From the NCBI GenBank assembly GCA_964036045.1, contig OZ038379.1, positions 18,104,001-18,168,000 on the forward strand: a DNA stretch of 64,000 bases, in the 5' to 3' direction. A program made the translations under genes and the position numbers. The notes under the pieces were generated by a model. That model ran no database searches and was not told where the DNA came from. It saw only the letters and a list, made by a program, of their open reading frames with translations. Shown here one piece after another: positions 4,781 to 58,381 of the stretch; position 1 is the stretch's first letter; the number at the start of each line of letters is the position of its first letter. The stretch is from Eutreptiella sp. 'Long Island Sound 2002'. Its lineage: Eukaryota; Protista; Euglenida.

Positions 4781-4912
4781 TCTCTGGCCGGCAGCCGTCG
4801 GTTGCCGGTAACTGCCCCACTGCCCACTACCCATATCACACCCACCAAACACCCCGGGCCTGCGGGAAAGCGGAGCCCACGTATTCCCCACCAGTTCTCG
4901 CGGCACACATAC

Positions 4913-5179
4913 CAATGTCCTCCTCCTCAACGATGTGCACCCGCGAGAACAGCTCCTGCTGCTCGACATCGCGCAGCCGCACCTCCTGCACCCCCAACAG
5001 CAGTTGCCGGAACTCGAGGCCGTGCTGCTGCCGCAGGTCCTGCAGCTCCTGCTCCAGGGCTGCCACCCGGGCCTCACTGCCGGCGCTCTGCTGCTGCAGG
5101 CGGGCAGCGGCCTGCTGCGCCTCCTGGGCCTCAGACTGGGCGGCCAGCAGCTGCGCCTGCAGCACCGTGCGCTTGACTA
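4913..5179 (-). CDS. Exon (VVKRTVLQAQLLAAQ...VEEEDI)
   Basis: ccgctccag|TA acceptor in phase 1, ATT G|gtatgt donor in phase 1; 267 nt; strong coiled-coil character. Confidence 0.88.
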
Positions 5180-9581: not shown

Positions 9582-12500
9582 CTGCGCGAGTTCCGCATGC
9601 ACGCCAAGCGTCTCCGCATCGACCTTGGAGCACGCAGCCATGATCGCCAGCACGTCCTCGCGCTCCCACAGCCCCAGCCCTACCCGGACCATGAGCTCCT
9701 CCTCCTGCAGGGCCCACACGTGCTGCTCGTTCAGCTCCTGCGACTCAAACGCGGACGCCAGCGCCTCCAGCTCGCGGCCGTACAGCGTGCGCACCGCATC
9801 CACCTCCAGCCCCGGGTCCATCACGGGCCGGGCCCAGCCCGCACTGGCGACCCCCGCGGTGCCGGCAAGCGCCGCGGCCGCGATACCGACCGCCTCGAGG
9901 TGCTGCTCGGCGGCGAGCCCCGCACGCTGCAGCAGCGCGTCCTCAAGCAGGGCCCAGCGCTCCCGAGAAGGGGCGCCCAGGGGGCTAATGCCTGAGGCCT
10001 GCCGTGACAGCGGGGGCGTCATGGGGGAGCGCGGGCGCACGCCAAACTCCTCGTGTACCCGGTCCAGCTCCGTCATGTACATGTCGTAGGCCACCGCCAG
10101 CTCCTCCTGCAGTGACTCGTGCTGCTGGATGGCGTGCCATGCGGCAGCGCTGTGAAGCTGACCGGCAAGATCCAGAAGCGCCGTGCAGGCATCCTGCTCA
10201 AGGGCCGACCGCCACGTGGCCTCGTTGTACGCAACACGCAGAATATCGCACTGCGCAACGAGGGCCCGCAGCCTGCATTGACCTGTGGTGAGCTGCGTGG
10301 GAATGGCGCGAAGATCCTGCAAAACGCGTTCCCCGTCCGCCAAGAAAACAGCAGGGGCATCGAGGGAAGAAGGATCAAGAGAGGGGTGTTGAGCAGTGAG
10401 AGACGTGTGCAAGTGATTAAAAAGAGCTCGCACCCGATCCAGCTCGTCACGCTGCTCAGCATCGACCACCGCATGGTACTCACCCAGCTCCACACTGCTT
10501 CCCCTCTGGATCTCAAGCAAATCCAAATACTGCTCTTCGAGGATCCTGCAACGCGCAGTCCCTTCCTCCTCAAGCAGCAACAGCTCCACCACCTGCTGCT
10601 CCTTCGCTTGCAGCGACTCCGCAGCTGCACCCGCATCCTCTGAATGCGCAACCATCACCGCCTGTAGGCCACGGACCGCATCCACATGCTCGGTGTACTC
10701 GGCCTCCAGGATTTGCTGTCGCAATGCACGCTCCTCCGCAGCTAAGTCATTCAGCTCAAGCCTCTCCTCAAGCTCAGCAACTCTCTGCCGCATATGCGCG
10801 GTCTCTTGCTCCCACTCCGCATGCTGTCGGTCCTTGTCGGCCAGCTGCATCCGTACCTCCGAGTACTGGCTTTGTTGTGATTGCAGTGTCCCTTGTAGAC
10901 TCAACAGTTGCTGCCGCAGCATGGCCTCCGTCATCACGCCAGACGCCATCGTCACATCAAAGAAGTCGCTGCTCTCCGACTCCTCAATCTGCAGCCGCTC
11001 GCTGAGTTCACTGTTCCTCACGTCCCACAACTGCCGCTCCTGCGCAAGATTGGCGGCTGCCGCATCCAATTGTGCAGAAGCAAGCTCAACAGCCTGTTGA
11101 TAGTCGGTGGATGCAGCCGACAACGCACTCCGCAGGCCAGACATGTTGCCCAACAGCCAGCTGTCAGACGCTGCAATCAGGTCAATCACCTCGCTGTGTT
11201 CATCTTCCATCAGCTGTTGCCGTCCTGCAAGCTCTGTGGATGTCAGGTCACTCAGCAGCTTGGCATATCCAATCACGTCAACCCCATCCTGAATCTGCGT
11301 CTTCTCCAAGTCCAGATTGCAGTTTTCTGCAATCACATCTGCAAGCATAGTTTCCTTCTCAACCAGCAGTGACTCGAACGTACTGCCCCGTTGAGCTTGG
11401 GCTGCAGTATGCGTCTCGAAGGCCTCAAACTGCAATGACACCCTTGCCTCAGCTTCAGCCCTCTCCAGCATCAAGATCTCCTCCTGCTGCGATGCACGAG
11501 CAGATGCTGCAGCCGCTTCCTCAGTGAGTTCAACAACGCGCTTTTCTGATGCAGCTGCTGCCGCACTCACTTCAACAACGCGCTGCTGTACCTCGGCAAA
11601 TTCCATTTGCGTTTGCTGAAGCTTCACTGACAGCGACGCTACATCTGCCTCACTCGAACCGCTGTCTTCAACCGCATGCCCATCCAGTGCAGCTGACTCT
11701 GTACCCTGCTGCAGGGCACACGTCACACCCTCGTGATGCCATACGCCCAGCTTCTCCATAATGCTGCAGTACTCGTCTTGCACCATCGCCAAGCGGCTTC
11801 CAATCTCTGCATATTCCGCATCCATCTTGGTCTTTTCCTCGCCAGCCTGCAGAAGCCGCTGCTCAAGCTCTTCTAGCTTGAATGCTGCACTCACACGCAC
11901 ATCGTCCTTGTCCTGTATTTCCTCCTGCAGTCGAGCTGCACTATCACGTTGGGCATCCACAACCTCCTGCAGCCTGTTGAACAGGGCTTCTTGATCCTGC
12001 AAAGCACGCTGGTAATCAACAAGCTGCTGATCACGCAGCTCCGCCTGCCTCGCATGCTCCGAAACCGCTGCACTATGCTGAAGTGTCACCCATTCCATGC
12101 CCAAACCATGTCGGCATCGGTACTCCTCAGCGATCAACTCGCCCCGCTGCAGCGTCTCCTGCAGCTCCGTTTCAGATGCAGCGTGTTGCGCTCGCACCCG
12201 ATCCAGCTCGTCGCGCTGCTCAGCATCGACCACCGCATGGTACTCACCCAGCTCCACACTGCTTCCCCTCTGGATCTCAAGCAAATCCAAATACTGCTCT
12301 TCGAGGATCCTGCAACGCGCAGTCCCTTCCTCCTCAAGCAGCAACAGCTCCACCACCTGCTGCTCCTTCGCTTGCAGCGACTCCGCAGCTGCACCCGCAT
12401 CCTCTGAATGCGCAACCATCACCGCCTGTAGGCCACGGACCGCATCCACATGCTCGGTGTACTCGGCCTCCAGGATTTGCTGTCGCAATGCACGCTCCTC

Positions 12501-15500
12501 CGCAGCTAAGTCATTCAGCTCAAGCCTCTCCTCAAGCTCAGCAACTCTCTGCCGCATATGCGCGGTCTCTTGCTCCCACTCCGCATGCTGTCGGTCCTTG
12601 TCGGCCAGCTGCATCCGTACCTCCGAGTATTGGCTTTGTTGTGATTGCAGTGTCCCTTGTAGACTCAACAGTTGCTGCCGCAGCATGGCCTCCGTCATCA
12701 CGCCAGACGCCATCGTCACATCAAAGAAGTCGCTGCTCTCCGACTCCTCAATCTGCAGCCGCTCGCTGAGTTCACTGTTCCTCACGTCCCACAACTGCCG
12801 CTCCTGCGCAAGATTGGCGGCTGCCGCATCCAATTGTGCAGAAGCAAGCTCAACAGCCTGTTGATAGTCGGTGGATGCAGCCGACAACGCACTCCGCAGG
12901 CCAGACATGTTGCCCAACAGCCAGCTGTCAGACGCTGCAATCAGGTCAATCACCTCGCTGTGTTCATCTTCCATCAGCTGTTGCCGTCCTGCAAGCTCTG
13001 TGGATGTCAGGTCACTCAGCAGCTTGGCATATCCAATCACGTCAACCCCATCCTGAATCTGCGTCTTCTCCAAGTCCAGATTGCAGTTTTCTGCAATCAC
13101 ATCTGCAAGCATAGTTTCCTTCTCAACCAGCAGTGACTCGAACGTACTGCCCCGTTGAGCTTGGGCTGCAGTATGCGTCTCGAAGGCCTCAAACTGCAAT
13201 GACACCCTTGCCTCAGCTTCAGCCCTCTCAAGCATCAAGATCTCCTCCTGCTGCGATGCACGAGCAGATGCTGCAGCCGCTTCCTCAGTGAGTTCAACAA
13301 CGCGCTTTTCTGATGCAGCTGCTGCCGCACTCACTTCAACAACGCGCTGCTGTACCTCGGCAAATTCCATTTGCGTTTGCTGAAGCTTCACTGACAGCGA
13401 CGCTACATCTGCCTCACTCGAACCGCTGTCTTCAACCGCATGCCCATCCAGTGCAGCTGACTCTGTACCCTGCTGCAGGGCACACGTCACACCCTCGTGA
13501 TGCCATACGCCCAGCTTCTCCATAATGCTGCAGTACTCGTCTTGCACCATCGCCAGTCGGCTTCCAATCTCTGCATATTCCGCATCCATCTTGGTCTTTT
13601 CCTCGCCAGCCTGCAGAAGCCGCTGCTCAAGCTCTTCTAGCTTGAATGCTGCACTCACACGCACATCGTCCTTGTCCTGTATTTCCTCCTGCAGTCGAGC
13701 TGCACTATCACGTTGGGCATCCACAACCTCCTGCAGCCTGTTGAACAGGGCTTCTTGATCCTGCAAAGCACGCTGGTAATCAACAAGCTGCTGATCACGC
13801 AGCTCCGCCTGCCTCGCATGCTCCGAAACCGCTGCACTATGCTGAAGTGTCACCCATTCCATGCCCAAACCATGTCGGCATCGGTACTCCTCAGCGATCA
13901 ACTCGCCCCGCTGCAGCGTCTCCTGCAGCCCCGTTTCAGATGCAGCGTGTTGCGCTCGCACCCGATCCAGCTCGTCACGCTGCTCAGCATCGACCACCGC
14001 ATGGTACTCACCCAGCTCCACACTGCTTCCCCTCTGGATCTCAAGCAAATCCAAATACTGCTCTTCGAGGATCCTGCAACGCGCAGTCCCTTCCTCCTCA
14101 AGCAGCAACAGCTCCACCACCTGCTGCTCCTTCGCTTGCAGCGACTCCGCAGCTGCACCCACATCCTCTGAATGCGCAACCATCACCGCCTGTAGGCCAC
14201 GGACCGCATCCACATGCTCGGTGTACTCGGCCTCCAGGATTTGCTGTCGCAATGCACGCTCCTCCGCAGCTAAGTCATTCAGCTCAAGCCTCTCCTCAAG
14301 CTCAGCAACTCTCTGCCGCATATGCGCGTTCTCTTGCTCCCACTCCGCATGCTGTCGGTCCTTGTCGGCCAGCTGCATCCGTACCTCCGAGTATTGGCTT
14401 TGTTGTGATTGCAGTGTCCCTTGTAGACTCAACAGTTGCTGCCGCAGCATGGCCTCCGTCATCACGCCAGACGCCATCGTCACATCAAAGAAGTCGCTGC
14501 TCTCCGACTCCTCAATCTGCAGCCGCTCGCTGAGTTCACTGTTCCTCACGTCCCACAACTGCCGCTCCTGCGCAAGATTGGCTGCTGCCGCATCCAATTG
14601 TGCAGAAGCAAGCTCAACAGCCTGTTGATAGTCGGTGGATGCAGCCGACAACGCACTCCGCAGGCCAGACACGTTGCCCAACAGCCAGCTGTCAGACGCT
14701 GCAATCAGGTCAATCACCTCGCTGTGTTCATCTTCCATCAGCTGTTGCCGTCCTGCAAGCTCTGTGGATGTCAGGTCACTCAGCAGCTTGGCATATCCAA
14801 TCACGTCAACCCCATCCTGAATCTGCGTCTTCTCCAAGTCCAGATTGCAGTTTTCTGCAATCACATCTGCAAGCATAGTTTCCTTCTCAACCAGCAGTGA
14901 CTCGAACGTACTGCACCGTTGAGCTTGGGCTGCAGTATGCGTCTCGAAGGCCTCAAACTGCAATGACACCCTTGCCTCAGCTTCAGCCCTCTCCAGCATC
15001 AAGATCTCCTCCTGCTGCGATGCACGAGCAGATGCTGCAGCCGCTTCCTCAGTGAGTTCAACAACGCGCTTTTCTGATGCAGCTGCTGCCGCACTCACTT
15101 CAACAACGCGCTGCTGTACCTCGGCAAATTCCATTTGCGTTTGCTGAAGCTTCACTGACAGCGACGCTACATCTGCCTCACTCGAACCGCTGTCTTCAAC
15201 CGCATGCCCATCCAGTGCAGCTGACTCTGTACCCTGCTGCAGGGCACACGTCACACCCTCGTGATGCCATACGCCCAGCTTCTCCATAATGCTGCAGTAC
15301 TCGTCTTGCACCATCGCCAAGCGGCTTCCAATCTCTGCATATTCCGCATCCATCTTGGTCTTTTCCTCGCCAGCCTGCAGAAGCCGCTGCTCAAGCTCTT
15401 CTAGCTTGAATGCTGCACTCACACGCGCTTCGTCCTTGTCCTGTATTTCCTCCTGCAGTCGAGCTGCACTATCACGTTGGGCATCCACAACCTCCTGCAG

Positions 15501-18500
15501 CCTGTTGAACAGGGCTTCTTGATCCTGCAAAGCACGCTGGTAATCAACAAGCTGCTGATCACGCAGCTCCGCCTGCCTCGCATGCTCCGAAACCGCTGCA
15601 CTATGCTGAAGTGTCACCCATTCCATGCCCAAACCATGTCGGCATCGGTACTCCTCAGCGATCAACTCGCCCCGCTGCAACGTCTCCTGCAGCTCCGTTT
15701 CAGATGCAGCGTGTTGCGCTTGCACCCGATCCAGCTCGTCACGCTGCTCAGCATCGACCACCGCATGGTACTCACCCAGCTCCACACTGCTTCCCCTCTG
15801 GATCTCAAGCAAATCCAAATACTGCTCTTCGAGGATCCTGCAACGCGCAGTCCCTTCCTCCTCAAGCAGCAACAGCTCCACCACCTGCTGCTCCTTCGCT
15901 TGCAGCGACTCCGCAGCTGCACCCGCATCCTCTGAATGCGCAACCATCACCGCCTGTAGGCCACGGACCGCATCCACATCCTCAGTGTACTCGGCCTCCA
16001 GGATTTGCTGTCGCAATGCACGCTCCTCCGCAGCTAAGTCATTCAGCTCAAGCCTCTCCTCAAGCTCAGCAACTCTCTGCCGCATAAGCGCGTTCTCTTT
16101 CTCCCAAATCGACAGATCTCGGGCAAGATTGGCGGCTGCCGCATCCAATTGTGCAGAAGCAAGCTCAACAGCCTGTTGATAGTCGGTGGATGCAGCCGAC
16201 AACGCACTCCGCAGGCCAGACACGTTGCCCAACGGCCAGCTGTCAGACGCTGCAATCAGGTCAATCACCTCGCTGTGTTCATCTTCCATCAGCTGTTGCC
16301 GCACCGCAAGCTCTGTGGATGTCAGGTCACTCAGCAGCTTGGCATATCCAATCAGGTCAACCCCATCCTGGATCTGCGCCATCTCCTGCTGCAGCCTTCG
16401 GTTCTCATCAACCGCTTCTGACAGCATCCTGTCCTTCTCAATCAGCATTGATTCGTACGCAACAAATCGTTGCCCCTGCTCCTCACATCCCACCTGCATG
16501 CGTGCGTTCGACTCAGACATCTCCAGCATCCGCGCCTGCTGCTCTGCTACCTGAGCGCTCGCAGCAACGGCTCGCTCTGTCTGCTCAGTAACCTGCTGTT
16601 GCAACACATCATGCTCCATCTGTTGCTGCTGAACCACCAGCGACAGCGACGCAGCGCTCTCAGCACCACGCTCCAGCATCACCCATTCCATGCCCAAACC
16701 ATGTCGGCATCGGTACTCCTCAGCGATCAACTCGCCCCGCTGCAGCGTCTCCTGCAGCTCCGTTTCAGATGCAGCGTGTTGCGCTCGCACCCGATCCAGC
16801 TCGTCGCGCTGCTCAGCATCGACCACCGCATGGTACTCACCCAGCTCTACACTGCTTCCCCTCTGGATCTCAAGCAAATCCAAATACTGCTCTTCGAGGA
16901 TCCTGCAACGCGCAGTCCCTTCCTCCTCAAGCAGCAACAGCTCCACCACCTGCTGCTCCTTCGCTTGCAGCGACTCCGCAGCTGCACCCGCATCCTCTGA
17001 ATGCGCAACCATCACCGCCTGTAGGCCACGGACCGCATCCACATGCTCGGTGTACTCGGCCTCCAGGATTTGCTGTCGCAATGCACGCTCCTCCGCAGCT
17101 AAGTCATTCAGCTCAAGCCTCTCCTCAAGCTCAGCAACTCTCTGCCGCATATGCGCGGTCTCTTGCTCCCACTCCGCATGCTGTCGGTCCTTGTCGGCCA
17201 GCTGCATCCGTACCTCCGAGTACTGGCTTTGTTGTGATTGCAGTGTCCCTTGTAGACTCAACAGTTGCTGCCGCAGCATGGCCTCCGTCATCACGCCAGA
17301 CGCCATCGTCACATCAAAGAAGTCGCTGCTCTCCGACTCCTCAATCTGCAGCCGCTCGCTGAGTTCACTGTTCCTCACGTCCCACAACTGCCGCTCCTGC
17401 GCAAGATTGGCGGCTGCCGCATCCAATTGTGCAGAAGCAAGCTCAACAGCCTGTTGATAGTCGGTGGATGCAGCCGACAACGCACTCCGCAGGCCAGACA
17501 TGTTGCCCAACAGCCAGCTGTCAGACGCTGCAATCAGGTCAATCACCTCGCTGTGTTCATCTTCCATCAGCTGTTGCCGTCCTGCAAGCTCTGTGGATGT
17601 CAGGTCACTCAGCAGCTTGGCATATCCAATCACGTCAACCCCATCCTGAATCTGCGTCTTCTCCAAGTCCAGATTGCAGTTTTCTGCAATCACATCTGCA
17701 AGCATAGTTTCCTTCTCAACCAGCAGTGACTCGAACGTACTGCCCCGTTGAGCTTGGGCTGCAGTATGCGTCTCGAAGGCCTCAAACTGCAATGACACCC
17801 TTGCCTCAGCTTCAGCCCTCTCAAGCATCAAGATCTCCTCCTGCTGCGATGCACGAGCAGATGCTGCAGCCGCTTCCTCAGTGAGTTCAACAACGCGCTT
17901 TTCTGATGCAGCTGCTGCCGCACTCACTTCAACAACGCGCTGCTGTACCTCGGCAAATTCCATTTGCGTTTGCTGAAGCTTCACTGACAGCGACGCTACA
18001 TCTGCCTCACTCGAACCGCTGTCTTCAACCGCATGCCCATCCAGTGCAGCTGACTCTGTACCCTGCTGCAGGGCACACGTCACACCCTCGTGATGCCATA
18101 CGCCCAGTTTCTCCATAATGCTGCAGTACTCGTCTTGCACCATGGCCAATCGGCTTCCAATCTCTGCACATCCCACATCTTGCGTGAATCTGTCTGACGT
18201 GGTCGTCTGCTTCTGCAACACCTGGCACGCAGAGGCTATGACGCCCTGACAAAACAGTATGTCGTGGCATTCGGCTTCAGAGATTTCAGATCGGTAGGAG
18301 ATTTCGGCCATTTGAAGATCCCACAACTGCCGCTCCCTTGTGAGAAGCATCAGCAAGTCGTCCAGCGGGAGGTCAGAATCAACCGAGGAAGCCGACAACG
18401 CACTCCGCAGGCCAGACACGTTGCCCAACAGCCAGCTGTCAGACGCTGCAATCAGGTCAATCACCTCGCTGTGTTCATCTTCCATCAGCTGTTGCCGCAC

Positions 18501-21500
18501 CGCAAGCTCTGTGGATGCCAGATCACTCAGCAGCTTGGCATATCCAATCAGGTCAACCCCATCCTGGATCTGCGCCATCTCCTGCTGCAGCCTTCGGTTC
18601 TCATCAACCGCTTCTGACAGCATCCTGTCCTTCTCAATCAGCATTGATTCGTACGCAATAAATTGTTGCCCCTGCTCCTCACATCCCACCTGCATGCGTG
18701 CGTTCGCCTCAGACATCTCCAGCATCCGCGCCTGCTGCTCTGCTACCTGAGCGCTCGCAGCAACGGCTCGCTCTGTCTGCTCAGTAACCTGCTGTTGCAA
18801 CACATCATGCTCCATCTGTTGCTGCTGAACCACCAGCGACAGTGACGCAGCGCTCTCAGCACCACGCTCCAGCATCACCCATTCCATGCCCAAACCATGT
18901 CGGCATCGGTACTCCTCAGCGATCAACTCGCCCCGCTGCAGCGTCTCCTGCAGCTCCGTTTCAGATGCAGCGTGTTGCGCTCGCACCCGATCCAGCTCGT
19001 CACGCTGCTCAGCATCGACCACCGCATGGTACTCACCCAGCTCCACACTGCTTCCCCTCTGGATCTCAAGCAAATCCAAATACTGCTCTTCGAGGATCCT
19101 GCAACGCGCAGTCCCTTCCTCCTCAAGCAGCAACAGCTCCACCACCTGCTGCTCCTTCGCTTGCAGCGACTCCGCAGCTGCACCCGCATCCTCTGAATGC
19201 GCAACCATCACCGCCTGTAGGCCACGGACCGCATCCACATGCTCGGTGTACTCGGCCTCCAGGATTTGCTGTCGCAATGCACGCTCCTCCGCAGCTAAGT
19301 CATTCAGCTCAAGCCTCTCCTCAAGCTCAGCAACTCTCTGCCGCATATGCGCGTTCTCTTGCTCCCACTCCGCATGCTGTCGGTCCTTGTCGGCCAGCTG
19401 CATCCGTACCTCCGAGTATTGGCTTTGTTGTGATTGCAGTGTCCCTTGTAGACTCAACAGTTGCTGCCGCAGCATGGCCTCCGTCATCACGCCAGACGCC
19501 ATCGTCACATCAAAGAAGTCGCTGCTCTCCGACTCCTCAATCTGCAGCCGCTCGCTGAGTTCACTGTTCCTCACGTCCCACAACTGCCGCTCCTGCGCAA
19601 GATTGGCGGCTGCCGCATCCAATTGTGCAGAAGCAAGCTCAACAGCCTGTTGATAGTCGGTGGATGCAGCCGACAACGCACTCCGCAGGCCAGACACGTT
19701 GCCCAACAGCCAGCTGTCAGACGCTGCAATCAGGTCAATCACCTCGCTGTGTTCATCTTCCATCAGCTGTTGCCGCACTGCAAGCTCTGTGGATGTCAGG
19801 TCACTCAGCAGCTTGGCATATCCAATCACGTCAACCCCATCCTGAATCTGCGTCTTCTCCAAGTCCAGATTGCAGTTTTCTGCAATCACATCTGCAAGCA
19901 TAGTTTCCTTCTCAACCAGCAGTGACTCGAACGTACTGCACCGTTGAGCTTGGGCTGCAGTATGCGTCTCGAAGGCCTCAAACTGCAATGACACCCTTGC
20001 CTCAGCTTCAGCCCTCTCCAGCATCAAGATCTCCTCCTGCTGCGATGCACGAGCAGATGCTGCAGCCGCTTCCTCAGTGAGTTCAACAACGCGCTTTTCT
20101 GATGCAGCTGCTGCCGCACTCACTTCAACAACGCGCTGCTGTACCTCGGCAAATTCCATTTGCGTTTGCTGAAGCTTCACTGACAGCGACGCTACATCTG
20201 CCTCACTCGAACCGCTGTCTTCAACCGCATGCCCATCCAGTGCAGCTGACTCTGTACCCTGCTGCAGGGCACACGTCACACCCTCGTGATGCCATACGCC
20301 CAGCTTCTCCATAATGCTGCAGTACTCGTCTTGCACCATCGCCAGTCGGCTTCCAATCTCTGCATATTCCGCATCCATCTTGGTCTTTTCCTCGCCAGCC
20401 TGCAGAAGCCGCTGCTCAAGCTCTTCTAGCTTGAATGCTGCACTCACACGCGCTTCGTCCTTGTCCTGTATTTCCTCCTGCAGTCGAGCTGCACTATCAC
20501 GTTGGGCATCCACAACCTCCTGCAGCCTGTTGAACAGGGCTTCTTGATCCAGCACAGCACGCTGGTAATCAACAAGCTGCTGATCACGCAGCTCCGCCTG
20601 CCTCGCATGCTCCAAAACCGCTGCACTATGCTGAAGTGTCACCCATTCCATGCCCAAACCATGTCGGCATCGGTACTCCTCAGCGATCAACTCGCCCCGC
20701 TGCAACGTCTCCTGCAGCTCCGTTTCAGATGCAGCGTGTTGCGCTCGCACCCGATCCAGCTCGTCGCGCTGCTCAGCATCGACCACCGCATGGTACTCAC
20801 CCAGCTCCACACTGCTTCCCCTCTGGATCTCAAGCAAATCCAAATACTGCTCTTCGAGGATCCTGCAACGCGCAGTCCCTTCCTCCTCAAGCAGCAACAG
20901 CTCCACCACCTGCTGCTCCTTCGCTTGCAGCGACTCCGCAGCTGCACCCGCATCCTCTGAATGCGCAACCATCACCGCCTGTAGGCCACGGACCGCATCC
21001 ACATGCTCGGTGTACTCGGCCTCCAGGATTTGCTGTCGCAATGCACGCTCCTCCGCAGCTAAGTCATTCAGCTCAAGCCTCTCCTCAAGCTCAGCAACTC
21101 TCTGCCGCATATGCGCGGTCTCTTGCTCCCACTCCGCATGCTGTCGGTCCTTGTCGGCCAGCTGCATCCGTACCTCCGAGTATTGGCTTTGTTGTGATTG
21201 CAGTGTCCCTTGTAGACTCAACAGTTGCTGCCGCAGCATGGCCTCCGTCATCACGCCAGACGCCATCGTCACATCAAAGAAGTCGCTGCTCTCCGACTCC
21301 TCAATCTGCAGCCGCTCGCTGAGTTCACTGTTCCTCACGTCCCACAACTGCCGCTCCTGCGCAAGATTGGCTGCTGCCGCATCCAATTGTGCAGAAGCAA
21401 GCTCAACAGCCTGTTGATAGTCGGTGGATGCAGCCGACAACGCACCCCGCAGGCCAGACACGTTGCCCAACAGCCAGCTGTCAGACGCTGCAATCAGGTC

Positions 21501-36500: not shown

Positions 36501-39500
36501 GTGTTCATCTTCCATCAGCTGTTGCCGTCCTGCAAGCTCTGTGGATGTCAGGTCACTCAGCAGCTTGGCATATCCAATCAGATCAACCCCATCCTGGATC
36601 TGCGCCATCTCCTGCTGCAGCCTTCGGTTCTCATCAACCGCTTCTGACAGCATCCTGTCCTTCTCAATCAGCATTGATTCGTACGCAACAAATCGTTGCC
36701 CCTGCTCCTCACATCCCACCTGCATGCGTGCGTTCGCCTCAGACATCTCCAGCATCCGCGCCTGCTGCTCTGCTACCTGAGCGCTCGCAGCAACGGCTCG
36801 CTCTGTCTGCTCAGTAACCTGCTGTTGCAACACATCATGCTCCATCTGTTGCTGCTGAACCACCAGCGACAGTGACGCAGCGCTTTCAGCGCCACGCTCC
36901 AGCATCACCCATTCCATGCCCAAACCATGTCGGTATCGGTACTCCTCAGCGATCAACTCGCCCCGCTGCAACGTCTCCTGCAGCTCCGTTTCAGATGCAG
37001 CGTGTTGCGCTCGCACCCGATCCAGCTCGTCGCGCTGCTCAGCATCGACCACCGCATGGTACTCACCCAGCTCCACACTGCTTCCCCTCTGGATCTCAAG
37101 CAAATCCAAATACTGCTCTTCGAGGATCCTGCAACGCGCAGTCCCTTCCTCCTCAAGCAGCAACAGCTCCACCACCTGCTGCTCCTTCGCTTGCAGCGAC
37201 TCCGCAGCTGCACCCGCATCCTCTGAATGCGCAACCATCACCGCCTGTAGGCCACGGACCGCATCCACATGCTCGGTGTACTCGGCCTCCAGGATTTGCT
37301 GTCGCAATGCACGCTCCTCCGCAGCTAAGTCATTCAGCTCAAGCCTCTCCTCAAGCTCAGCAACTCTCTGCCGCATATGCGCGGTCTCTTGCTCCCACTC
37401 CGCATGCTGTCGGTCCTTGTCGGCCAGCTGCATCCGTACCTCCGAGTACTGGCTTTGCTGTGATTGCAGTGTCCCTTGTAGACTCAACAGTTGCTGCCGC
37501 AGCATGGCCTCCGTCATCACGCCAGACGCCATCGTCACATCAAAGAAGTCGCTGCTCTCCGACTCCTCAATCTGCAGCCGCTCGCTGAGTTCACTGTTCC
37601 TCACGTCCCACAATTGTCGGTTGCTAACAACGGTCATGGCTGCTGCATCCTCAAACGCAGAGGCAATCAGAACAGCTTGCTGGAAATCAGATGATGTCGC
37701 TGCCAACGCACGCCGCAGGCCAGACACGTTGCCCAACAGCCAGCTGTCAGACGCTGCAATCAGGTCAATCACCTCGCTGTGTTCATCTTCCATCAGCTGT
37801 TGCCGTCCTGCAAGCTCTGTGGATGTCAGGTCACTCAGCAGCTTGGCATATCCAATCAGGTCAACCCCATCCTGGATCTGCGCCATCTCCTGCTGCAGCC
37901 TTCGGTTCTCATCAACCGCTTCTGACAGCATCCTGTCCTTCTCAATCAGCATTGATTCGTACGCAACAAATCGTTGCCCCTGCTCCTCACATCCCACCTG
38001 CATGCGTGCGTTCGCCTCAGACATCTCCAGCATCCGCGCCTGCTGCTCTGCTACCTGAGCGCTCGCAGCAACGGCTCGCTCTGTCTGCTCAGTAACCTGC
38101 TGTTGCAACACATCATGCTCCATCTGTTGCTGCTGAACCACCAGCGACAGTGACGCAGCGCTTTCAGCGCCACGCTCCAGCATCACCCATTCCATGCCCA
38201 AACCATGTCGGTATCGGTACTCCTCAGCGATCAACTCGCCCCGCTGCAACGTCTCCTGCAGCTCCGTTTCAGATGCAGCGTGTTGCGCTCGCACCCGATC
38301 CAGCTCGTCGCGCTGCTCAGCATCGACCACCGCATGGTACTCACCCAGCTCCACACTGCTTCCCCTCTGGATCTCAAGCAAATCCAAATACTGCTCTTCG
38401 AGGATCCTGCAACGCGCAGTCCCTTCCTCCTCAAGCAGCAACAGCTCCACCACCTGCTGCTCCTTCGCTTGCAGCGACTCCGCAGCTGCACCCGCATCCT
38501 CTGAATGCGCAACCATCACCGCCTGTAGGCCACGGACCGCATCCACATGCTCGGTGTACTCGGCCTCCAGGATTTGCTGTCGCAATGCACACTCCTCCGC
38601 AGCTAAGTCATTCAGCTCAAGCCTCTCCTCAAGCTCAGCAACTCTCTGCCGCATATGCGCGGTCTCTTGCTCCCACTCCGCATGCTGTCGGTCCTTGTCG
38701 GCCAGCTGCATCCGTACCTCCGAGTACTGGCTTTGTTGTGATTGCAGTGTCCCTTGTAGACTCAACAGTTGCTGCCGCAGCATGGCCTCCGTCATCACGC
38801 CAGACGCCATCGTCACATCAAAGAAGTCGCTGCTCTCCGACTCCTCAATCTGCAGCCGCTCGCTGAGTTCACTGTTCCTCACGTCCCACAATTGTCGGTT
38901 GCTAACAACGGTCATGGCTGCTGCATCCTCAAACGCAGAGGCAATCAGAATAGCTTGCTGGAAATCAGATGATGTTGCTGCCAACGCACGCCGCAGGCCA
39001 GACACGTTGCCCAACAGCCAGCTGTCAGACGCTGCAATCAGGTCAATCACCTCGCTGTGTTCATCTTCCATCAGCTGTTGCCGTCCTGCAAGCTCTGTGG
39101 ATGTCAGGTCACTCAGCAGCTTGGCATATCCAACCAGATCCACCCCATCCTGGATCTGCGCCATCTCCTGCTGCAGCCTTCGGTTCTCATCAACCGCTTC
39201 TGACAGCATCCTGTCCTTCTCAATCAGCATTGATTCGTACGCAACAAATCGTTGCCCCTGCTCCTCACATCCCACCTGCATGCGTGCGTTCGACTCAGAC
39301 ATCTCCAGCATCCGCGCCTGCTGCTCTGCTACCTGAGCGCTCGCAGCAACGGCTCGCTCTGTCTGCTCAGTAACCTGCTGTTGCAACACATCATGCTCCA
39401 TCTGTTGCTGCTGAACCACCAGCGACAGTGACGCAGCGCTTTCAGCGCCACGCTCCAGCATCACCCATTCCATGCCCAAACCATGTCGGTATCGGTACTC

Positions 39501-42500
39501 CTCAGCGATCAACTCGCCCCGCTGCAACGTCTCCTGCAGCTCCGTTTCAGATGCAGCGTGTTGCACTCGCACCCGATCCAGCTCGTCGCGCTGCTCAGCA
39601 TCGACCACCGCATGGTACTCACCCAGCTCCACACTGCTTCCCCTCTGGATCTCAAGCAAATCCAAATACTGCTCTTCGAGGATCCTGCAACGCGCAGTCC
39701 CTTCCTCCTCAAGCAGCAACAGCTCCACCACCTGCTGCTCCTTCGCTTGCAGCGACTCCGCAGCTGCACCCGCATCCTCTGAATGCGCAACCATCACCGC
39801 CTGTAGGCCACGGACCGCATCCACATGCTCGGTGTACTCGGCCTCCAGGATTTGCTGTCGCAATGCACACTCCTCCGCAGCTAAGTCATTCAGCTCAAGC
39901 CTCTCCTCAAGCTCAGCAACTCTCTGCCGCATATGCGCGGTCTCTTGCTCCCACTCCGCATGCTGTCGGTCCTTGTCGGCCAGCTGCATCCGTACCTCCG
40001 AGTACTGGCTTTGTTGTGATTGCAGTGTCCCTTGTAGACTCAACAGTTGCTGCCGCAGCATGGCCTCCGTCATCACGCCAGACGCCATCGTCACATCAAA
40101 GAAGTCGCTGCTCTCCGACTCCTCAATCTGCAGCCGCTCGCTGAGTTCACTGTTCCTCACGTCCCACAATTGTCGGTTGCTAACAACGGTCATGGCTGCT
40201 GCATCCTCAAACGCAGAGGCAATCAGAATAGCTTGCTGGAAATCAGATGATGTTGCTGCCAACGCACGCCGCAGGCCAGACACGTTGCCCAACAGCCAGC
40301 TGTCAGACGCTGCAATCAGGTCAATCACCTCGCTGTGTTCATCTTCCATCAGCTGTTGCCGTCCTGCAAGCTCTGTGGATGTCAGGTCACTCAGCAGCTT
40401 GGCATATCCAATCAGATCAACTGCATCCTGGATCTGCGCCATCTCCTGCTGCAGCCTTCGGTTCTCATCAACCGCTTCTGACAGCATCCTGTCCTTCTCA
40501 ATCAGCATTGATTCGTACGCAACAAATCGTTGCCCCTGCTCCTCACATCCCACCTGCATGCGTGCGTTCGACTCAGACATCTCCAGCATCCGCGCCTGCT
40601 GCTCTGCTACCTGAGCGCTCGCAGCAACGGCTCGCTCTGTCTGCTCAGTAACCTGCTGTTGCAACACATCATGCTCCATCTGTTGCTGCTGAACCACCAG
40701 CGACAGTGACGCAGCGCTTTCAGCGCCACGCTCCAGCATCACCCATTCCATGCCCAAACCATGTCGGTATCGGTACTCCTCAGCGATCAACTCGCCCCGC
40801 TGCAACGTCTCCTGCAGCTCCGTTTCAGATGCAGCGTGTTGCACTCGCACCCGATCCAGCTCGTCGCGCTGCTCAGCATCGACCACCGCATGGTACTCAC
40901 CCAGCTCTACACTGCTTCCCCTCTGGATCTCAAGCAAATCCAAATACTGCTCTTCGAGGATCCTGCAACGCGCAGTCCCTTCCTCCTCAAGCAGCAACAG
41001 CTCCACCACCTGCTGCTCCTTCGCTTGCAGCGACTCCGCAGCTGCACCCGCATCCTCTGAATGCGCAACCATCACCGCCTGTAGGCCACGGACCGCATCC
41101 ACATGCTCGGTGTACTCGGCCTCCAGGATTTGCTGTCGCAATGCACGCTCCTCCGCAGCTAAGTCATTCAGCTCAAGCCTCTCCTCAAGCTCAGCAACTC
41201 TCTGCCGCATATGCGCGGTCTCTTGCTCCCACTCCGCATGCTGTCGGTCCTTGTCGGCCAGCTGCATCCGTACCTCCGAGTACTGGCTTTGTTGTGATTG
41301 CAGTGTCCCTTGTAGACTCAACAGTTGCTGCCGCAGCATGGCCTCCGTCATCACGCCAGACGCCATCGTCACATCAAAGAAGTCGCTGCTCTCCGACTCC
41401 TCAATCTGCAGCCGCTCGCTGAGTTCACTGTTCCTCACGTCCCACAATTGTCGGTTGCTAACAACGGTCATGGCTGCTGCATCCTCAAACGCAGAGGCAA
41501 TCAGAATAGCTTGCTGGAAATCAGATGATGTTGCTGCCAACGCACGCCGCAGGCCAGACACGTTGCCCAACAGCCAGCTGTCAGACGCTGCAATCAGGTC
41601 AATCACCTCGCTGTGTTCATCTTCCATCAGCTGTTGCCGCACCGCAAGCTCTGTGGATGTCAGGTCACTCAGCAGCTTGGCATATCCAACCAGATCCACC
41701 CCATCCTGGATCTGCGCCATCTCCTGCTGCAGCCTTCGGTTCTCATCAACCGCTTCTGACAGCATCCTGTCCTTCTCAATCAGCATTGATTCGTACGCAA
41801 CAAATCGTTGCCCCTGCTCCTCACATCCCACCTGCATGCGTGCGTTCGACTCAGACATCTCCAGCATCCGCGCCTGCTGCTCTGCTACCTGAGCGCTCGC
41901 AGCAACGGCTCGCTCTGTCTGCTCAGTAACCTGCTGTTGCAACACATCATGCTCCATCTGTTGCTGCTGAACCACCAGCGACAGTGACGCAGCGCTTTCA
42001 GCGCCACGCTCCAGCATCACCCATTCCATGCCCAAACCATGTCGGTATCGGTACTCCTCAGCGATCAACTCGCCCCGCTGCAACGTCTCCTGCAGCTCCG
42101 TTTCAGATGCAGCGTGTTGCGCTCGCACCCGATCCGGCTCGTCGCGCTGCTCAGCATCGACCACCGCATGGTACTCACCCAGCTCCACACTGCTTCCCCT
42201 CTGGATCTCAAGCAAATCCAAATACTGCTCTTCGAGGATCCTGCAACGCGCAGTCCCTTCCTCCTCAAGCAGCAACAGCTCCACCACCTGCTGCTCCTTC
42301 GCTTGCAGCGACTCCGCAGCTGCACCCGCATCCTCTGAATGCGCAACCATCACCGCCTGTAGGCCACGGACCGCATCCACATGCTCGGTGTACTCGGCCT
42401 CCAGGATTTGCTGTCGCAATGCACGCTCCTCCGCAGCTAAGTCATTCAGCTCAAGCCTCTCCTCAAGCTCAGCAACTCTCTGCCGCATATGCGCGGTCTC

Positions 42501-45500
42501 TTGCTCCCACTCCGCATGCTGTCGGTCCTTGTCGGCCAGCTGCATCCGTACCTCCGAGTACTGGCTTTGTTGTGATTGCAGTGTCCCTTGTAGACTCAAC
42601 AGTTGCTGCCGCAGCATGGCCTCCGTCATCACGCCAGACGCCATCGTCACATCAAAGAAGTCGCTGCTCTCCGACTCCTCAATCTGCAGCCGCTCGCTGA
42701 GTTCACTGTTCCTCACGTCCCACAATTGTCGGTTGCTAACAACGGTCATGGCTGCTGCATCCTCAAACGCAGAGGCAATCAGAATAGCTTGCTGGAAATC
42801 AGATGATGTTGCTGCCAACGCACGCCGCAGGCCAGACACGTTGCCCAACAGCCAGCTGTCAGACGCTGCAATCAGGTCAATCACCTCGCTGTGTTCATCT
42901 TCCATCAGCTGTTGCCGTCCTGCAAGCTCTGTGGATGTCAGGTCACTCAGCAGCTTGGCATATCCAACCAGATCCACCCCATCCTGGATCTGCGCCATCT
43001 CCTGCTGCAGCCTTCGGTTCTCATCAACCGCTTCTGACAGCATCCTGTCCTTCTCAATCAGCATTGATTCGTACGCAACAAATCGTTGCCCCTGCTCCTC
43101 ACATCCCACCTGCATGCGTGCGTTCGACTCAGACATCTCCAGCATCCGCGCCTGCTGCTCTGCTACCTGAGCGCTCGCAGCAACGGCTCGCTCTGTCTGC
43201 TCAGTAACCTGCTGTTGCAACACATCATGCTCCATCTGTTGCTGCTGAACCACCAGCGACAGTGACGCAGCGCTTTCAGCGCCACGCTCCAGCATCACCC
43301 ATTCCATGCCCAAACCATGTCGGTATCGGTACTCCTCAGCGATCAACTCGCCCCGCTGCAACGTCTCCTGCAGCTCCGTTTCAGATGCAGCGTGTTGCAC
43401 TCGCACCCGATCCAGCTCGTCGCGCTGCTCAGCATCGACCACCGCATGGTACTCACCCAGCTCCACACTGCTTCCCCTCTGGATCTCAAGCAAATCCAAA
43501 TACTGCTCTTCGAGGATCCTGCAACGCGCAGTCCCTTCCTCCTCAAGCAGCAACAGCTCCACCACCTGCTGCTCCTTCGCTTGCAGCGACTCCGCAGCTG
43601 CACCCGCATCCTCTGAATGCGCAACCATCACCGCCTGTAGGCCACGGACCGCATCCACATGCTCGGTGTACTCGGCCTCCAGGATTTGCTGTCGCAATGC
43701 ACACTCCTCCGCAGCTAAGTCATTCAGCTCAAGCCTCTCCTCAAGCTCAGCAACTCTCTGCCGCATATGCGCGGTCTCTTGCTCCCACTCCGCATGCTGT
43801 CGGTCCTTGTCGGCCAGCTGCATCCGTACCTCCGAGTACTGGCTTTGTTGTGATTGCAGTGTCCCTTGTAGACTCAACAGTTGCTGCCGCAGCATGGCCT
43901 CCGTCATCACGCCAGACGCCATCGTCACATCAAAGAAGTCGCTGCTCTCCGACTCCTCAATCTGCAGCCGCTCGCTGAGTTCACTGTTCCTCACGTCCCA
44001 CAATTGTCGGTTGCTAACAACGGTCATGGCTGCTGCATCCTCAAACGCAGAGGCAATCAGAATAGCTTGCTGGAAATCAGATGATGTTGCTGCCAACGCA
44101 CGCCGCAGGCCAGACACGTTGCCCAACAGCCAGCTGTCAGACGCTGCAATCAGGTCAATCACCTCGCTGTGTTCATCTTCCATCAGCTGTTGCCGTCCTG
44201 CAAGCTCTGTGGATGTCAGGTCACTCAGCAGCTTGGCATATCCAATCAGATCAACTGCATCCTGGATCTGCGCCATCTCCTGCTGCAGCCTTCGGTTCTC
44301 ATCAACCGCTTCTGACAGCATCCTGTCCTTCTCAATCAGCATTGATTCGTACGCAACAAATCGTTGCCCCTGCTCCTCACATCCCACCTGCATGCGTGCG
44401 TTCGACTCAGACATCTCCAGCATCCGCGCCTGCTGCTCTGCTACCTGAGCGCTCGCAGCAACGGCTCGCTCTGTCTGCTCAGTAACCTGCTGTTGCAACA
44501 CATCATGCTCCATCTGTTGCTGCTGAACCACCAGCGACAGTGACGCAGCGCTTTCAGCGCCACGCTCCAGCATCACCCATTCCATGCCCAAACCATGTCG
44601 GTATCGGTACTCCTCAGCGATCAACTCGCCCCGCTGCAACGTCTCCTGCAGCTCCGTTTCAGATGCAGCGTGTTGCACTCGCACCCGATCCAGCTCGTCG
44701 CGCTGCTCAGCATCGACCACCGCATGGTACTCACCCAGCTCTACACTGCTTCCCCTCTGGATCTCAAGCAAATCCAAATACTGCTCTTCGAGGATCCTGC
44801 AACGCGCAGTCCCTTCCTCCTCAAGCAGCAACAGCTCCACCACCTGCTGCTCCTTCGCTTGCAGCGACTCCGCAGCTGCACCCGCATCCTCTGAATGCGC
44901 AACCATCACCGCCTGTAGGCCACGGACCGCATCCACATGCTCGGTGTACTCGGCCTCCAGGATTTGCTGTCGCAATGCACGCTCCTCCGCAGCTAAGTCA
45001 TTCAGCTCAAGCCTCTCCTCAAGCTCAGCAACTCTCTGCCGCATATGCGCGGTCTCTTGCTCCCACTCCGCATGCTGTCGGTCCTTGTCGGCCAGCTGCA
45101 TCCGTACCTCCGAGTACTGGCTTTGTTGTGATTGCAGTGTCCCTTGTAGACTCAACAGTTGCTGCCGCAGCATGGCCTCCGTCATCACGCCAGACGCCAT
45201 CGTCACATCAAAGAAGTCGCTGCTCTCCGACTCCTCAATCTGCAGCCGCTCGCTGAGTTCACTGTTCCTCACGTCCCACAATTGTCGGTTGCTAACAACG
45301 GTCATGGCTGCTGCATCCTCAAACGCAGAGGCAATCAGAATAGCTTGCTGGAAATCAGATGATGTTGCTGCCAACGCACGCCGCAGGCCAGACACGTTGC
45401 CCAACAGCCAGCTGTCAGACGCTGCAATCAGGTCAATCACCTCGCTGTGTTCATCTTCCATCAGCTGTTGCCGCACCGCAAGCTCTGTGGATGTCAGGTC

Positions 45501-48500
45501 ACTCAGCAGCTTGGCATATCCAACCAGATCCACCCCATCCTGGATCTGCGCCATCTCCTGCTGCAGCCTTCGGTTCTCATCAACCGCTTCTGACAGCATC
45601 CTGTCCTTCTCAATCAGCATTGATTCGTACGCAACAAATCGTTGCCCCTGCTCCTCACATCCCACCTGCATGCGTGCGTTCGACTCAGACATCTCCAGCA
45701 TCCGCGCCTGCTGCTCTGCTACCTGAGCGCTCGCAGCAACGGCTCGCTCTGTCTGCTCAGTAACCTGCTGTTGCAACACATCATGCTCCATCTGTTGCTG
45801 CTGAACCACCAGCGACAGTGACGCAGCGCTTTCAGCGCCACGCTCCAGCATCACCCATTCCATGCCCAAACCATGTCGGTATCGGTACTCCTCAGCGATC
45901 AACTCGCCCCGCTGCAACGTCTCCTGCAGCTCCGTTTCAGATGCAGCGTGTTGCGCTCGCACCCGATCCGGCTCGTCGCGCTGCTCAGCATCGACCACCG
46001 CATGGTACTCACCCAGCTCCACACTGCTTCCCCTCTGGATCTCAAGCAAATCCAAATACTGCTCTTCGAGGATCCTGCAACGCGCAGTCCCTTCCTCCTC
46101 AAGCAGCAACAGCTCCACCACCTGCTGCTCCTTCGCTTGCAGCGACTCCGCAGCTGCACCCGCATCCTCTGAATGCGCAACCATCACCGCCTGTAGGCCA
46201 CGGACCGCATCCACATGCTCGGTGTACTCGGCCTCCAGGATTTGCTGTCGCAATGCACGCTCCTCCGCAGCTAAGTCATTCAGCTCAAGCCTCTCCTCAA
46301 GCTCAGCAACTCTCTGCCGCATATGCGCGGTCTCTTGCTCCCACTCCGCATGCTGTCGGTCCTTGTCGGCCAGCTGCATCCGTACCTCCGAGTACTGGCT
46401 TTGTTGTGATTGCAGTGTCCCTTGTAGACTCAACAGTTGCTGCCGCAGCATGGCCTCCGTCATCACGCCAGACGCCATCGTCACATCAAAGAAGTCGCTG
46501 CTCTCCGACTCCTCAATCTGCAGCCGCTCGCTGAGTTCACTGTTCCTCACGTCCCACAATTGTCGGTTGCTAACAACGGTCATGGCTGCTGCATCCTCAA
46601 ACGCAGAGGCAATCAGAACAGCTTGCTGGAAATCAGATGATGTCGCTGCCAACGCACGCCGCAGGCCAGACACGTTGCCCAACAGCCAGCTGTCAGACGC
46701 TGCAATCAGGTCAATCACCTCGCTGTGTTCATCTTCCATCAGCTGTTGCCGCACCGCAAGCTCTGTGGATGTCAGGTCACTCAGCAGCTTGGCATATCCA
46801 ATCACGTCAACCCCATCCTGAATCTGCGTCTTCTCCTGCTGCAGCCTTCGGTTCTCATCAACCGCTTCTGACAGCATAGTTTCCTTCTCAACCAGCAGTG
46901 ACTCGAACGTACTGCACCGTTGAGCTTGGGCTGCAGTATGCGTCTCGAAGGCCTCAAACTGCAATGACACCCTTGCCTCAGCTTCAGCCCTCTCAAGCAT
47001 CAAGATCTCCTCCTGCTGCGATGCACGAGCAGATGCTGCAGCCGCTTCCTCAGTGAGTTCAACAACGCGCGTTTCTGATGCAGCTGCTGCCGCACTCACT
47101 TCAACAACGCGCTGCTGTACCTCGGCAAATTCCATTTGCGTTTGCTGAAGCTTCACTGACAGCGACGCTACATCTGCCTCACTCGAACTGCTGTCTTCAA
47201 CCGCATGCCCATCCAGTGCAGCTGACTCTGTACCCTGCTGCAGGGCACACGTCACACCCTCGTGATGCCATACGCCCAGCTTCTCCATAATGCTGCAGTA
47301 CTCGTCTTGCACCATCGCCAGTCGGCTTCCAATCTCTGCATATTCCGCATCCATCTTGGTCTTTTCCTCGCCAGCCTGCAGAAGCCGCTGCTCAAGCTCT
47401 TCTAGCTTGAATGCTGCACTCACACGCGCTTCGTCCTTGTCCTGTATTTCCTCCTGCAGTCGAGCTGCACTATCACGTTGGGCATCCACAACCTCCTGCA
47501 GCCTGTTGAACAGAGCTTCTTGATCCTGCAAAGCACGCTGGTAATCAACAAGCTGCTGATCACGCAGCTCCGCCTGCCTCGCATGCTCCGAAACCGCTGC
47601 ACTATGCTGAAGTGTCACCCATTCCATGCCCAAACCATGTCGGCATCGGCACTCCTCAGCGATCAACTCGCCCCGCTGCAACGTCTCCTGCAGCTCCGTT
47701 TCAGATGCAGCGTGTTGCGCTCGCACCCGATCCAGCTCGTTGCGCTGCTCAGCATCGACCACCGCATGGTACTCAACCAGCTCCACACTGCTTCCCCTCT
47801 GGATCTCAAGCAAATCCAAATACTGCTCTTCGAGGATCCTGCAACGCGCAGTCCCTTCCTCCTCAAATAGCAACAGCTCCACCACCTGCTGCTCCTTCGT
47901 TTGCAGGTACTCCGCAGCTGCACCCGCATCCTCAGCCACTGTTCCAGTCGCGTCACGCATTTGAATGGCACCTGTCTTCCAATACTCCCTGTCCGAAAGT
48001 GCCGTTGCCAATTGCTGTTTCAATGTGTCGATCTCAGCCCTGTGATGCACTTTATCACTTTCCAACTGGTCAATGTAACCAAGAAGCATTACCTTCTCGT
48101 CTCCAAGGCGACGAAGAAGTGTTGTGCTCGTACATGATACGTCAACAGCAAAAGCCACATGAGAAACAGACAGCCCGACCCGGTGTTCTAACTCCTGGAT
48201 CTGTAAATGGCAACATGCCGTATTGTTCTGCAGTCCTGCAATCTGTCCCCGCAACCCCGTGTTGACTGCCTGGACATCCCTCAGCTGCGTCTCAACGTCG
48301 ACTGTCATTTGCTGTTGCCCTGCCAGCTGCTGCTGCAGGGCCGCTTGCACTTCAGCAATCTGTCCTCGATCACTGTGCATTGCACGAGTCAAAGCTCTGT
48401 GTATTGTGCTGAAGGCATCCGCAGTACCAGCCCCCTCAGATCCCCATATATTAAGACGGCTGCTCGCCTCAGATTCTTGGAAGCGCATCCAGTGTTCTTG

Positions 48501-58001: not shown

Positions 58002-58381
58002 CTGCCCCTGCCCCTGCAGCTGGTCCAAGAGTTCAAAGCGGCCCTCCACCTCCGCCGTCATCAGCGCAATGCGGTCCTCCACCTCGGCCTCCAACACCTC
58101 CTGCTGCTGCCGATCCTGCAGCCGCATCCACTCCACCATACTCCCTACCTCGTGGATCTCCCCACTATATAGCGCCTGCAGTGCCTGCAGGTCGGCCACC
58201 TTCCCTAACACCTCGTCCTCCTTCGCGTCAAGTGCACGCCGCGCGGCGGCCAGCTCGGACTGCAGTGTGCGCATCTGCTGGTGGGCCTCATGTATGGCCT
58301 CAGTTGCGAGGGCAACGAAGTCCTGGTGCTCAGATTGCACCAGCCCCCACCGTCGCTGTGTCTCCTCCAGAGGCGTGCCTT
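58002..58381 (-). CDS. Exon of giant coiled-coil protein gene (EGTPLEETQRRW...LQGQGQ)
   Basis: ctctcttcatcttgcag|AA acceptor (phase 1), CAG|gtattg donor (phase 0); 380 nt; E/Q/A/L-rich heptad-like sequence. Confidence 0.9.

Follow-up and report, generated by a model that had tools for sequence, protein, structure and literature searches.

The subject of this study is a giant gene in a stretch of 64,000 nucleotides (nt), hereafter the window, from the euglenid Eutreptiella sp. 'Long Island Sound 2002' (GenBank assembly GCA_964036045.1, contig OZ038379.1, positions 18,104,001 to 18,168,000). Positions are given in window coordinates; the window is part of the contig designated C2, and genome-wide searches cover the 2.28-Gb assembly. 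The minus strand carries a stop-free open reading frame (ORF) of 15,735 codons, the longest ORF in the other frames of the window being 380 amino acids (aa) long. Counted from the first methionine, its product has a computed mass of ~1.76 MDa and a computed isoelectric point of 4.5; E, A, L and Q are abundant in it, and K and P are very scarce. Two tandem arrays, A and B, lie within this ORF (Table 1). Two of the four 523-aa units of array A are identical in protein, and the fifth leads into array B, where the sequence preceding the lead-in is unit-like only faintly. A relationship between the two arrays was considered and excluded, as BLASTP found zero similarity between them. Array B combines blocks that are almost identical from unit to unit with islands that exist in two deeply diverged states, a pattern that probably reflects concerted evolution.

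Unit boundaries were set by cutting the array B protein at the anchor motif LEIQRGSS. This yields 26 units arranged head to tail, with a length of either 426 aa (type S) or 588 aa (type L), and a truncated 27th. Tandem Repeats Finder returned nothing, its period limit being 500 nt; a second repeat finder and motif anchors were used instead. The former independently delimited 27 in-register copies from position 10426, with spacings of 1764, 1278, 1257, 1065 and 2196 nt. Each unit is built of three shared blocks (B1, B2 and B3, of 65, 45 and 173 codons), interrupted by a first variable segment, V1, which is either S or L, and by a second, V2, which is either alpha or beta. An earlier note on this DNA had counted 19 S branches, 7 full L branches and 10 alpha segments, had placed them in an order running from an L-alpha unit to a truncated core, and had described the long branch as 486 nt longer than the short one. 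Motif counts return the same figures (19 S-branch, 7 L-branch and 10 alpha motifs, with 15 exact beta motifs), cutting at the anchor reproduces the order down to the gamma composite and the 213-nt deletion, and L exceeds S by 162 aa, that is, by 486 nt.

Length differences among units (486, 213, 21 and 918 nt) are all multiples of three. The 21-nt in-frame deletion, corresponding to one heptad, is common to units U16 and U18, and the S-beta unit U20 shows a single S-to-G change in its beta motif. The S branch is a diverged homologue of the C-terminal part of the L branch, to whose last 134 residues it aligns with ~45% identity and three gaps; S and L are thus old versions of one segment, L having 138 extra N-terminal residues. 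The gamma segment of U22 aligns in frame with beta and the start of B3, at ~35% identity. The idea that it is a frameshifted beta was ruled out, given this in-frame alignment and the stops present in the other frames. U22, in which gamma lies, and U23 have the look of relics or accidents.

Table 1. Positions of the giant ORF, of its repeat units and of associated features (window coordinates, except for the paralogue on contig C20)
Feature	Position	Strand	Description
Giant stop-free ORF	9279..56486	minus	15,735 codons
Array A	48150..55520	minus	four 523-aa units, >99% identical; fifth diverges after ~364 aa
Lead-in to array B	47811..47939	minus	last 43 aa of shared block B3, ~93% identical
U01	46047..47810	minus	sole L-alpha unit (haplotype L / patch-1 / alpha)
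U02-U09	35823..46046	minus	eight S-alpha units
V2 (alpha/beta) island, example	36336..36434	minus	alpha copy in U09; 99 nt, 40 alpha/beta differences
U10	34545..35822	minus	S-beta between S-alpha units U09 and U11
U11	33267..34544	minus	last S-alpha unit
U12-U16	26898..33266	minus	five S-beta units; U16 with 21-nt in-frame deletion
U17-U21	19071..26897	minus	L-beta and S-beta alternating (U17, U19, U21 are L-beta)
L-specific acidic linker	26268..26363	minus	predicted non-helical, G/S-rich; residues 179-210 of U17; absent from S units
U22	16875..19070	minus	composite of 732 aa in which an S core and gamma precede an L unit (from ~residue 158 on, with beta)
Gamma	18168-18404	minus	in U22
U23	15810..16874	minus	S-beta, 355 aa; 213-nt (71-aa) in-frame deletion, diverged junction
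U24-U26	10518..15809	minus	three L-beta units
U27	10425..10517	minus	31-aa truncated core
Unique C-terminal region	9618-10424	minus	ORF continues here past U27; without relatives
Candidate upstream exon, same gene	57846..58580	minus	open frame, coiled-coil-like; putative
Candidate downstream exons	4839-5456, 2356-3021, 1565-2233, also 193-600	minus	open frames, coiled-coil-like; putative
Broken array B paralogue (5' end)	C20:40,066,687-40,077,226		L-alpha, 5.5-kb insertion, L-alpha, L-alpha, partial S

Comparison of the units reveals two very different degrees of divergence. In the shared blocks, the mean DNA difference between units is 1.49% for B1, 1.58% for B2 and 0.48% for B3. For alpha against beta the difference amounts to 41% over 93 nt, and the edges of this island are base-sharp: units are identical as far as unit position 665, become identical once more past position 764, and many of the differences in between are synonymous. 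Proportions of synonymous (pS) and nonsynonymous (pN) differences were obtained by the Nei-Gojobori method. Between alpha and beta, pS is saturated at 0.70 and pN is 0.30, with a ratio of nonsynonymous to synonymous substitution rates (dN/dS) of ~0.19, which indicates that both states evolved under constraint. Outside the alpha/beta island, the comparison of U01 with U17 gives a pS of only 0.019 and a pN of 0.008. Because pS is saturated within the island and so low in the rest of the unit, the islands are far older than their flanks. A third two-state island, missed by the earlier note, is a patch of 13 codons that ends the S/L block. Every S unit carries its first state, patch-1, and so does U01; the remaining L units all carry patch-2.

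Units of the same type also bear traces of selection. Within types, pN/pS in array B is 0.32-0.37. Together with the fact that every length difference preserves the frame, this argues that array B is coding and under purifying selection, rather than a satellite open by chance. Most units can be told apart, with 19 distinct haplotypes for V1 and 17 for B1, and two unit pairs are identical.

Copies of array B elsewhere in the genome help to date these events. Both the unique C-terminus and array A occur once in the genome, which thus supplies no second haplotype for comparison. Contig C20 carries a broken paralogue of the 5' end of array B, overall 3-7% diverged, in which the partial S corresponds to the first 310 nt of an S unit. 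Its alpha and patch-1 segments are 2-8% distant from the corresponding states of U01 and ~40% distant from beta and patch-2. As this copy keeps both the L-alpha type and the L-alpha-to-S junction, the two are old. In the shared blocks, on ~201 synonymous sites in each comparison, U01 differs from the L-beta unit U17 at 3 synonymous positions (pS 0.015) and from the same-type C20 unit at 13 (pS 0.065). U01 is thus nearer, in its shared blocks, to the L-beta units of its own array than to the unit of its own type on C20, which is the signature expected if array B was homogenised internally after the C20 copy left. In the broken copy, pN/pS is 0.5-0.6. Stops or frameshifts are present in the copies found elsewhere in the genome, and the giant ORF is free of them.

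Copies of a second type consist of a 2.5-kb piece of L-2-beta sequence that contains a frameshift and is 97.5% identical to U17. Neither type brings in a module state that array B lacks. The 2.5-kb fragment, as seen at C4:178,642,362-178,644,874, comprises the last 77 nt of a unit, a full L-2-beta unit and 659 nt of the next. It was found in at least nine places, namely on C4 (three times), C23 (several times), C25 and C564 and at C20:141-144 kb. The segments that carry it exceed 9 kb, are mutually 99.5-99.8% identical and have short-period satellite flanks. Since most of them sit at or near contig ends, they are probably subtelomeric. In another assembly, the counterpart of the C20 paralogue adjoins a run of PEPCK-like ORF fragments, among which are three contiguous 51-aa pieces with a period of ~150 nt.

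How the modules are combined bears directly on the mechanism. Of the eight haplotypes that three two-state islands allow, four are present: L-1-alpha (in U01 only), S-1-alpha, S-1-beta and L-2-beta. In four-gamete tests, V1 against the patch and the patch against V2 both pass, and V1 against V2 is the only pair to fail; a single exchange in or near B2 would be enough to produce all the combinations observed. The association between S/L and alpha/beta is not significant (Fisher p = 0.19), with low power. B1, B2 and B3 have few variable sites, and the variants at these sites are shuffled over S, L, alpha and beta units, and B2 haplotypes in particular are spread over S-alpha, S-beta, L-alpha and L-beta units. 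By the Hudson-Kaplan minimum, the S units have undergone at least 6 recombination events and the L units at least 8. From this shuffling and from these minima, exchange of sequence between units through the shared blocks is both real and frequent, the shared blocks serving as recombination substrates in the ordinary sense of concerted evolution.

The order of the units is, for its part, strongly marked by local amplification. U02-04 (42213-46046) and U05-07 (38379-42212) show 1 difference in 3,834 nt, which points to a recent three-unit duplication. U09 and U11 differ by 1 nt, even though the S-beta unit U10 sits between them. A pair made of a 419-aa S unit and an L unit is repeated, U16-17 and U18-19 showing 32 differences in 3,021 nt in addition to their common 21-nt deletion, and U24-U26 differ pairwise at 6-13 positions in 1,764 nt. 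Along the array, alpha and beta form only 4 runs (permutation p = 4e-5), and L units come later on average (Mann-Whitney p = 0.025). S and L do not form fewer runs than expected by chance (p = 0.19), and the first unit of the array is an L. Local duplication makes neighbours alike, so that duplication of one-, two- and three-unit blocks looks like a sufficient explanation for the runs and for the apparent N-to-C gradient.

Several proposals of the earlier note can be judged from these results. That the shared blocks act as recombination anchors is borne out by the shuffling of their variants across unit types. The proposal that the two choices recombine independently holds in part: all four pairings of S/L with alpha/beta do exist, but when the patch is taken into account only half of the possible haplotypes are realised, and one exchange suffices. 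Moreover, L-alpha is represented by a single unit at the edge of the array and belongs to the old type kept on C20, so that it should not be taken for a fresh recombinant. Similarly, the gradient from S/alpha to L/beta is supported by the clustering of alpha and beta and by the later mean position of L, but not by the S/L runs, nor by the L unit with which the array begins. The positional code of binding surfaces and the built-in route to allelic diversity that the note had proposed find no support in these results and are not needed to explain the data.

Homology searches place the protein in no described family. With the units and termini as queries, Pfam gave only sub-threshold coiled-coil families, and Rfam gave no match. 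A HMMER search of 1.84 billion representative proteins returned only three fragments, with at least 89% identity, all from another Euglena assembly. Word-index protein searches with an L-beta unit, an S-alpha segment and the unique C-terminus gave fragments of another Euglena assembly or nothing, and the ESM Atlas gave generic coiled-coil look-alikes only (<0.9). A spectrin repeat is a three-helix bundle of about 106 aa, and a spectrin-repeat rod was considered because 426 is close to 4 x 106; it was rejected, since no unit had a Pfam spectrin match at E <= 0.1.

Single-sequence AlphaFold2 models contain 90-92% helix, at a low confidence (predicted local distance difference test, pLDDT, of 54 for U09-U10 and 65 for U17). 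In the L unit, the sole long coil predicted by the model is formed by residues 179-210. With z = 4.3-6.6, L units, array A and the N-terminus show a clear heptad periodicity; that of S units is weak (z ~1.9). By a rough measure, beta keeps local heptad periodicity and alpha does not. As a fully extended coiled coil, the ORF product would have a computed length of ~2.3 µm, with 63 nm for an S unit and 87 nm for an L unit. The protein may be a long filament or tether, the L-rich C-terminal third of which would be more jointed.

The gene probably extends beyond the 15,735 codons, with further exons on both sides, because coiled-coil-like frames flank the ORF on the same strand and because the final ~100 codons of the ORF have a non-coding look, like read-through into an intron. 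These flanking frames are rich in E, A, L and Q, and each of the candidate exons, searched singly against Pfam, was without a match. Between 12083 and 46821, the plus strand has antisense ORFs of 221-380 aa in every array B unit: 380 aa in all alpha units but U01 (319 aa), and 248-255 aa in beta units. Most simply, they may follow from codon composition on the sense strand. A 133-nt stretch (56877-57009) immediately upstream of the giant ORF matches, with 82-85% identity, hundreds of copies of an ~85-nt satellite. Elsewhere this satellite builds large arrays, among them those at C2:90.87-91.02 Mb and on contigs C24, C13 and C3. A 477-nt copy of 56878-57354, 96% identical, lies at C2:20,498,775. 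Finally, the genome was searched with a 24-nt query, which we take to be the spliced-leader (SL) sequence of Euglena. It occurs 5,458 times with at most 1 mismatch, both strands included, and its reversed control 0 times. The matches are not confined to tandem clusters but spread along chromosomes, with roughly one per few hundred kb on C1, a distribution suggestive of numerous scattered SL-RNA genes or of retroposed copies that bear the SL.

Taken together, these observations can be accounted for by concerted evolution, acting by unequal exchange together with gene conversion, on a giant, lineage-restricted and almost all-helical structural protein of euglenids, a reading to which we give a probability of about 0.72. 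Array B would be the main rod of the protein, encoded in one exon of ~47 kb. Unequal exchange and gene conversion between out-of-register units would keep B1, B2 and B3 near-identical, and the three islands (V1 with its S and L forms, the 13-codon patch and V2 with alpha and beta) would each retain two ancient, deeply diverged states. Three old lineages, L-1-alpha, S-1-alpha and L-2-beta, and one recombinant class, S-1-beta or an equivalent choice, may then have been amplified locally as blocks of one, two or three units, giving the runs and the apparent gradient. The islands may persist since conversion tracts abort in sequence diverged by 40%, or since both states are useful, or for both reasons. 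Each L unit would contribute ~115 helix residues and a flexible hinge of 32 residues, making the C-terminal third more jointed, and the protein would form a filament on the micrometre scale, reaching the length computed above if it is a fully extended coiled coil.

Several points weigh against this reading. Order and copy number rest on one assembly, and near-identical units of 1.3 kb over 37 kb are hard to assemble. The contrast of 3 with 13 synonymous differences, on which concerted evolution leans, is one of small counts. The structure models have low confidence, and coiled coil in the S units, with the weak periodicity found there, is only probable. In addition, the persistence of the islands may fit passive retention and selection alike, and the dN/dS of alpha and beta would also fit a functional difference between them.

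This last point leads to the question of selection on the order itself. Alpha and beta, S and L could be distinct docking or mechanical modules, whose order on a filament of ~2 µm is kept by selection. Such a functional zonation would agree with the divergence of alpha and beta under purifying selection (dN/dS ~0.19) and with their survival while the flanks were homogenised. The predicted hinge-like linker that L units add, the local heptad periodicity of beta but not of alpha, and the L-alpha-to-S junction, which stands at the N-terminal edge of the array and also in the older C20 copy, point in the same direction. We nevertheless hold it unlikely: a few very recent block duplications, one of them with 1 difference in 3.8 kb, fully account for the order and carry the signature of turnover, just four of the eight module combinations exist, and the irregular U22 and U23 look like tolerated accidents and not like design. 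A ruler of ~2 µm, on which three zones (stiff S-alpha, S-beta and hinged L-beta) place different partners at set distances within the cytoskeleton, the islands being selected and the rest homogenised, seems similarly doubtful.

The same near-identity that speaks for turnover can be read as an error of assembly, in which near-identical repeats were collapsed, expanded or mis-joined, so that unit order or copy number would be partly artefactual. The units are 98-100% identical over 37 kb, two unit pairs are indistinguishable, the three-unit duplicate differs at 1 nt, and the other public Euglena assembly yielded short paralogous fragments, all of them pseudogenic, but never a long array B ORF, in searches that may not have covered records close to this genome. 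Against this, the frame is intact across 27 units with all indels multiples of three, most units are distinguished by a set of variants peculiar to them (19 V1 and 17 B1 haplotypes), which provides markers enough for long reads, and the independent paralogous copies corroborate the unit types and the L-alpha-to-S junction; an artefact of this kind is therefore considered improbable. By far the least credible explanation is that the array is no working gene, but a coding-looking satellite or a dead gene in which one open unit was copied many times. Homologues were found only in Euglena, and tandem copying of a single open unit automatically yields a long ORF. However, one and the same frame stays open through units of 426 and 588 codons, through array A with its 523-codon units and through the unique regions at both termini, the array has a lower pN/pS than the broken C20 copy (0.32-0.37 as compared with 0.5-0.6), and the stops or frameshifts of the copies elsewhere are lacking in the giant ORF.

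If concerted evolution is indeed at work, array B offers an unusually clean case of it, halting at base-sharp borders, and thus a natural test of how divergence limits gene conversion. The gene would also encode an undescribed, predicted helical protein of megadalton size, of interest since the cytoskeleton of the genus Euglena is molecularly little known, and it would become a candidate molecular ruler if the order of its modules proved conserved. It further calls for caution in annotation, as a gene without relatives or domains in which the order of repeats depends on the quality of the assembly.

Various known systems share some of these features. Cassettes for programmed surface variation, such as pilin, vlsE and the mosaics of VSG, likewise have variable parts with conserved flanks usable for recombination. 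In array B, by contrast, each variable block has two states, and the protein looks cytoskeletal rather than surface-exposed. A locus of the antigenic-variation type was considered and set aside, there being no archive of silent donors with additional variant modules: the outside copies, that is, the C20 units and the 2.5-kb L-2-beta fragments, bring in nothing new. Titin and nebulin are giant filamentous proteins with zone-specific super-repeats and act as molecular rulers. Like them, the protein described here would be a giant filament with different kinds of repeats on different stretches. Unlike them, array B has no array-wide regular super-repeat, only local two- and three-unit blocks, and no homology to them; a ruler of their type was rejected on this ground and in view of the irregular U22 and U23.

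Closer in phylogeny, Kinetoplastea, the sister group, have giant repeat-rich cytoskeletal proteins. In Trypanosoma brucei, FAZ10 contains 52 near-identical repeats of 35 aa inside coiled-coil domains, and its apparent mass of ~2000 kDa, compared with an annotated 502 kDa, was attributed by the authors to under-assembled repeats (PMC5358337). Both proteins belong to Euglenozoa, reach megadalton size and combine a single long ORF, a composition of coiled-coil type and near-identical tandem repeats. The units of array B differ in being 12-17 times longer (426 or 588 aa) and in carrying what appear to be ancient two-state islands. No homology to FAZ10-like giant proteins was found in the HMMER library search, in which no direct pairwise comparison with FAZ10 was included. 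As homology to such proteins was not detected, the likeness is best taken as analogy and not as membership.

The closest parallels are evolutionary. Higher-order arrays under concerted evolution are known from alpha-satellite, from the ensemble repeats of spider silk, from the constant and subrepeat regions of Balbiani-ring genes and from the kringle IV types of apolipoprotein(a). As in these, the units of array B seem to have been homogenised by exchange or conversion, blocks of several units are duplicated, variants have spread locally so that adjacent units resemble one another, and the units at the edges have diverged further. The head-to-tail identity, block duplication, within-array likeness and mosaic variants by which such arrays are recognised are all found. 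Array B departs from them in the contrast between a pS of ~0.015 in its shared blocks and 0.70 in a base-sharp island of 99 nt, and in that its units encode long helical rod segments. To judge from the sequence, the evolutionary pattern thus places array B among the tandem arrays that undergo concerted evolution and form higher-order repeats, a well-known class in which it would stand out by homogenised blocks lying beside saturated islands inside long units of 426 and 588 aa.

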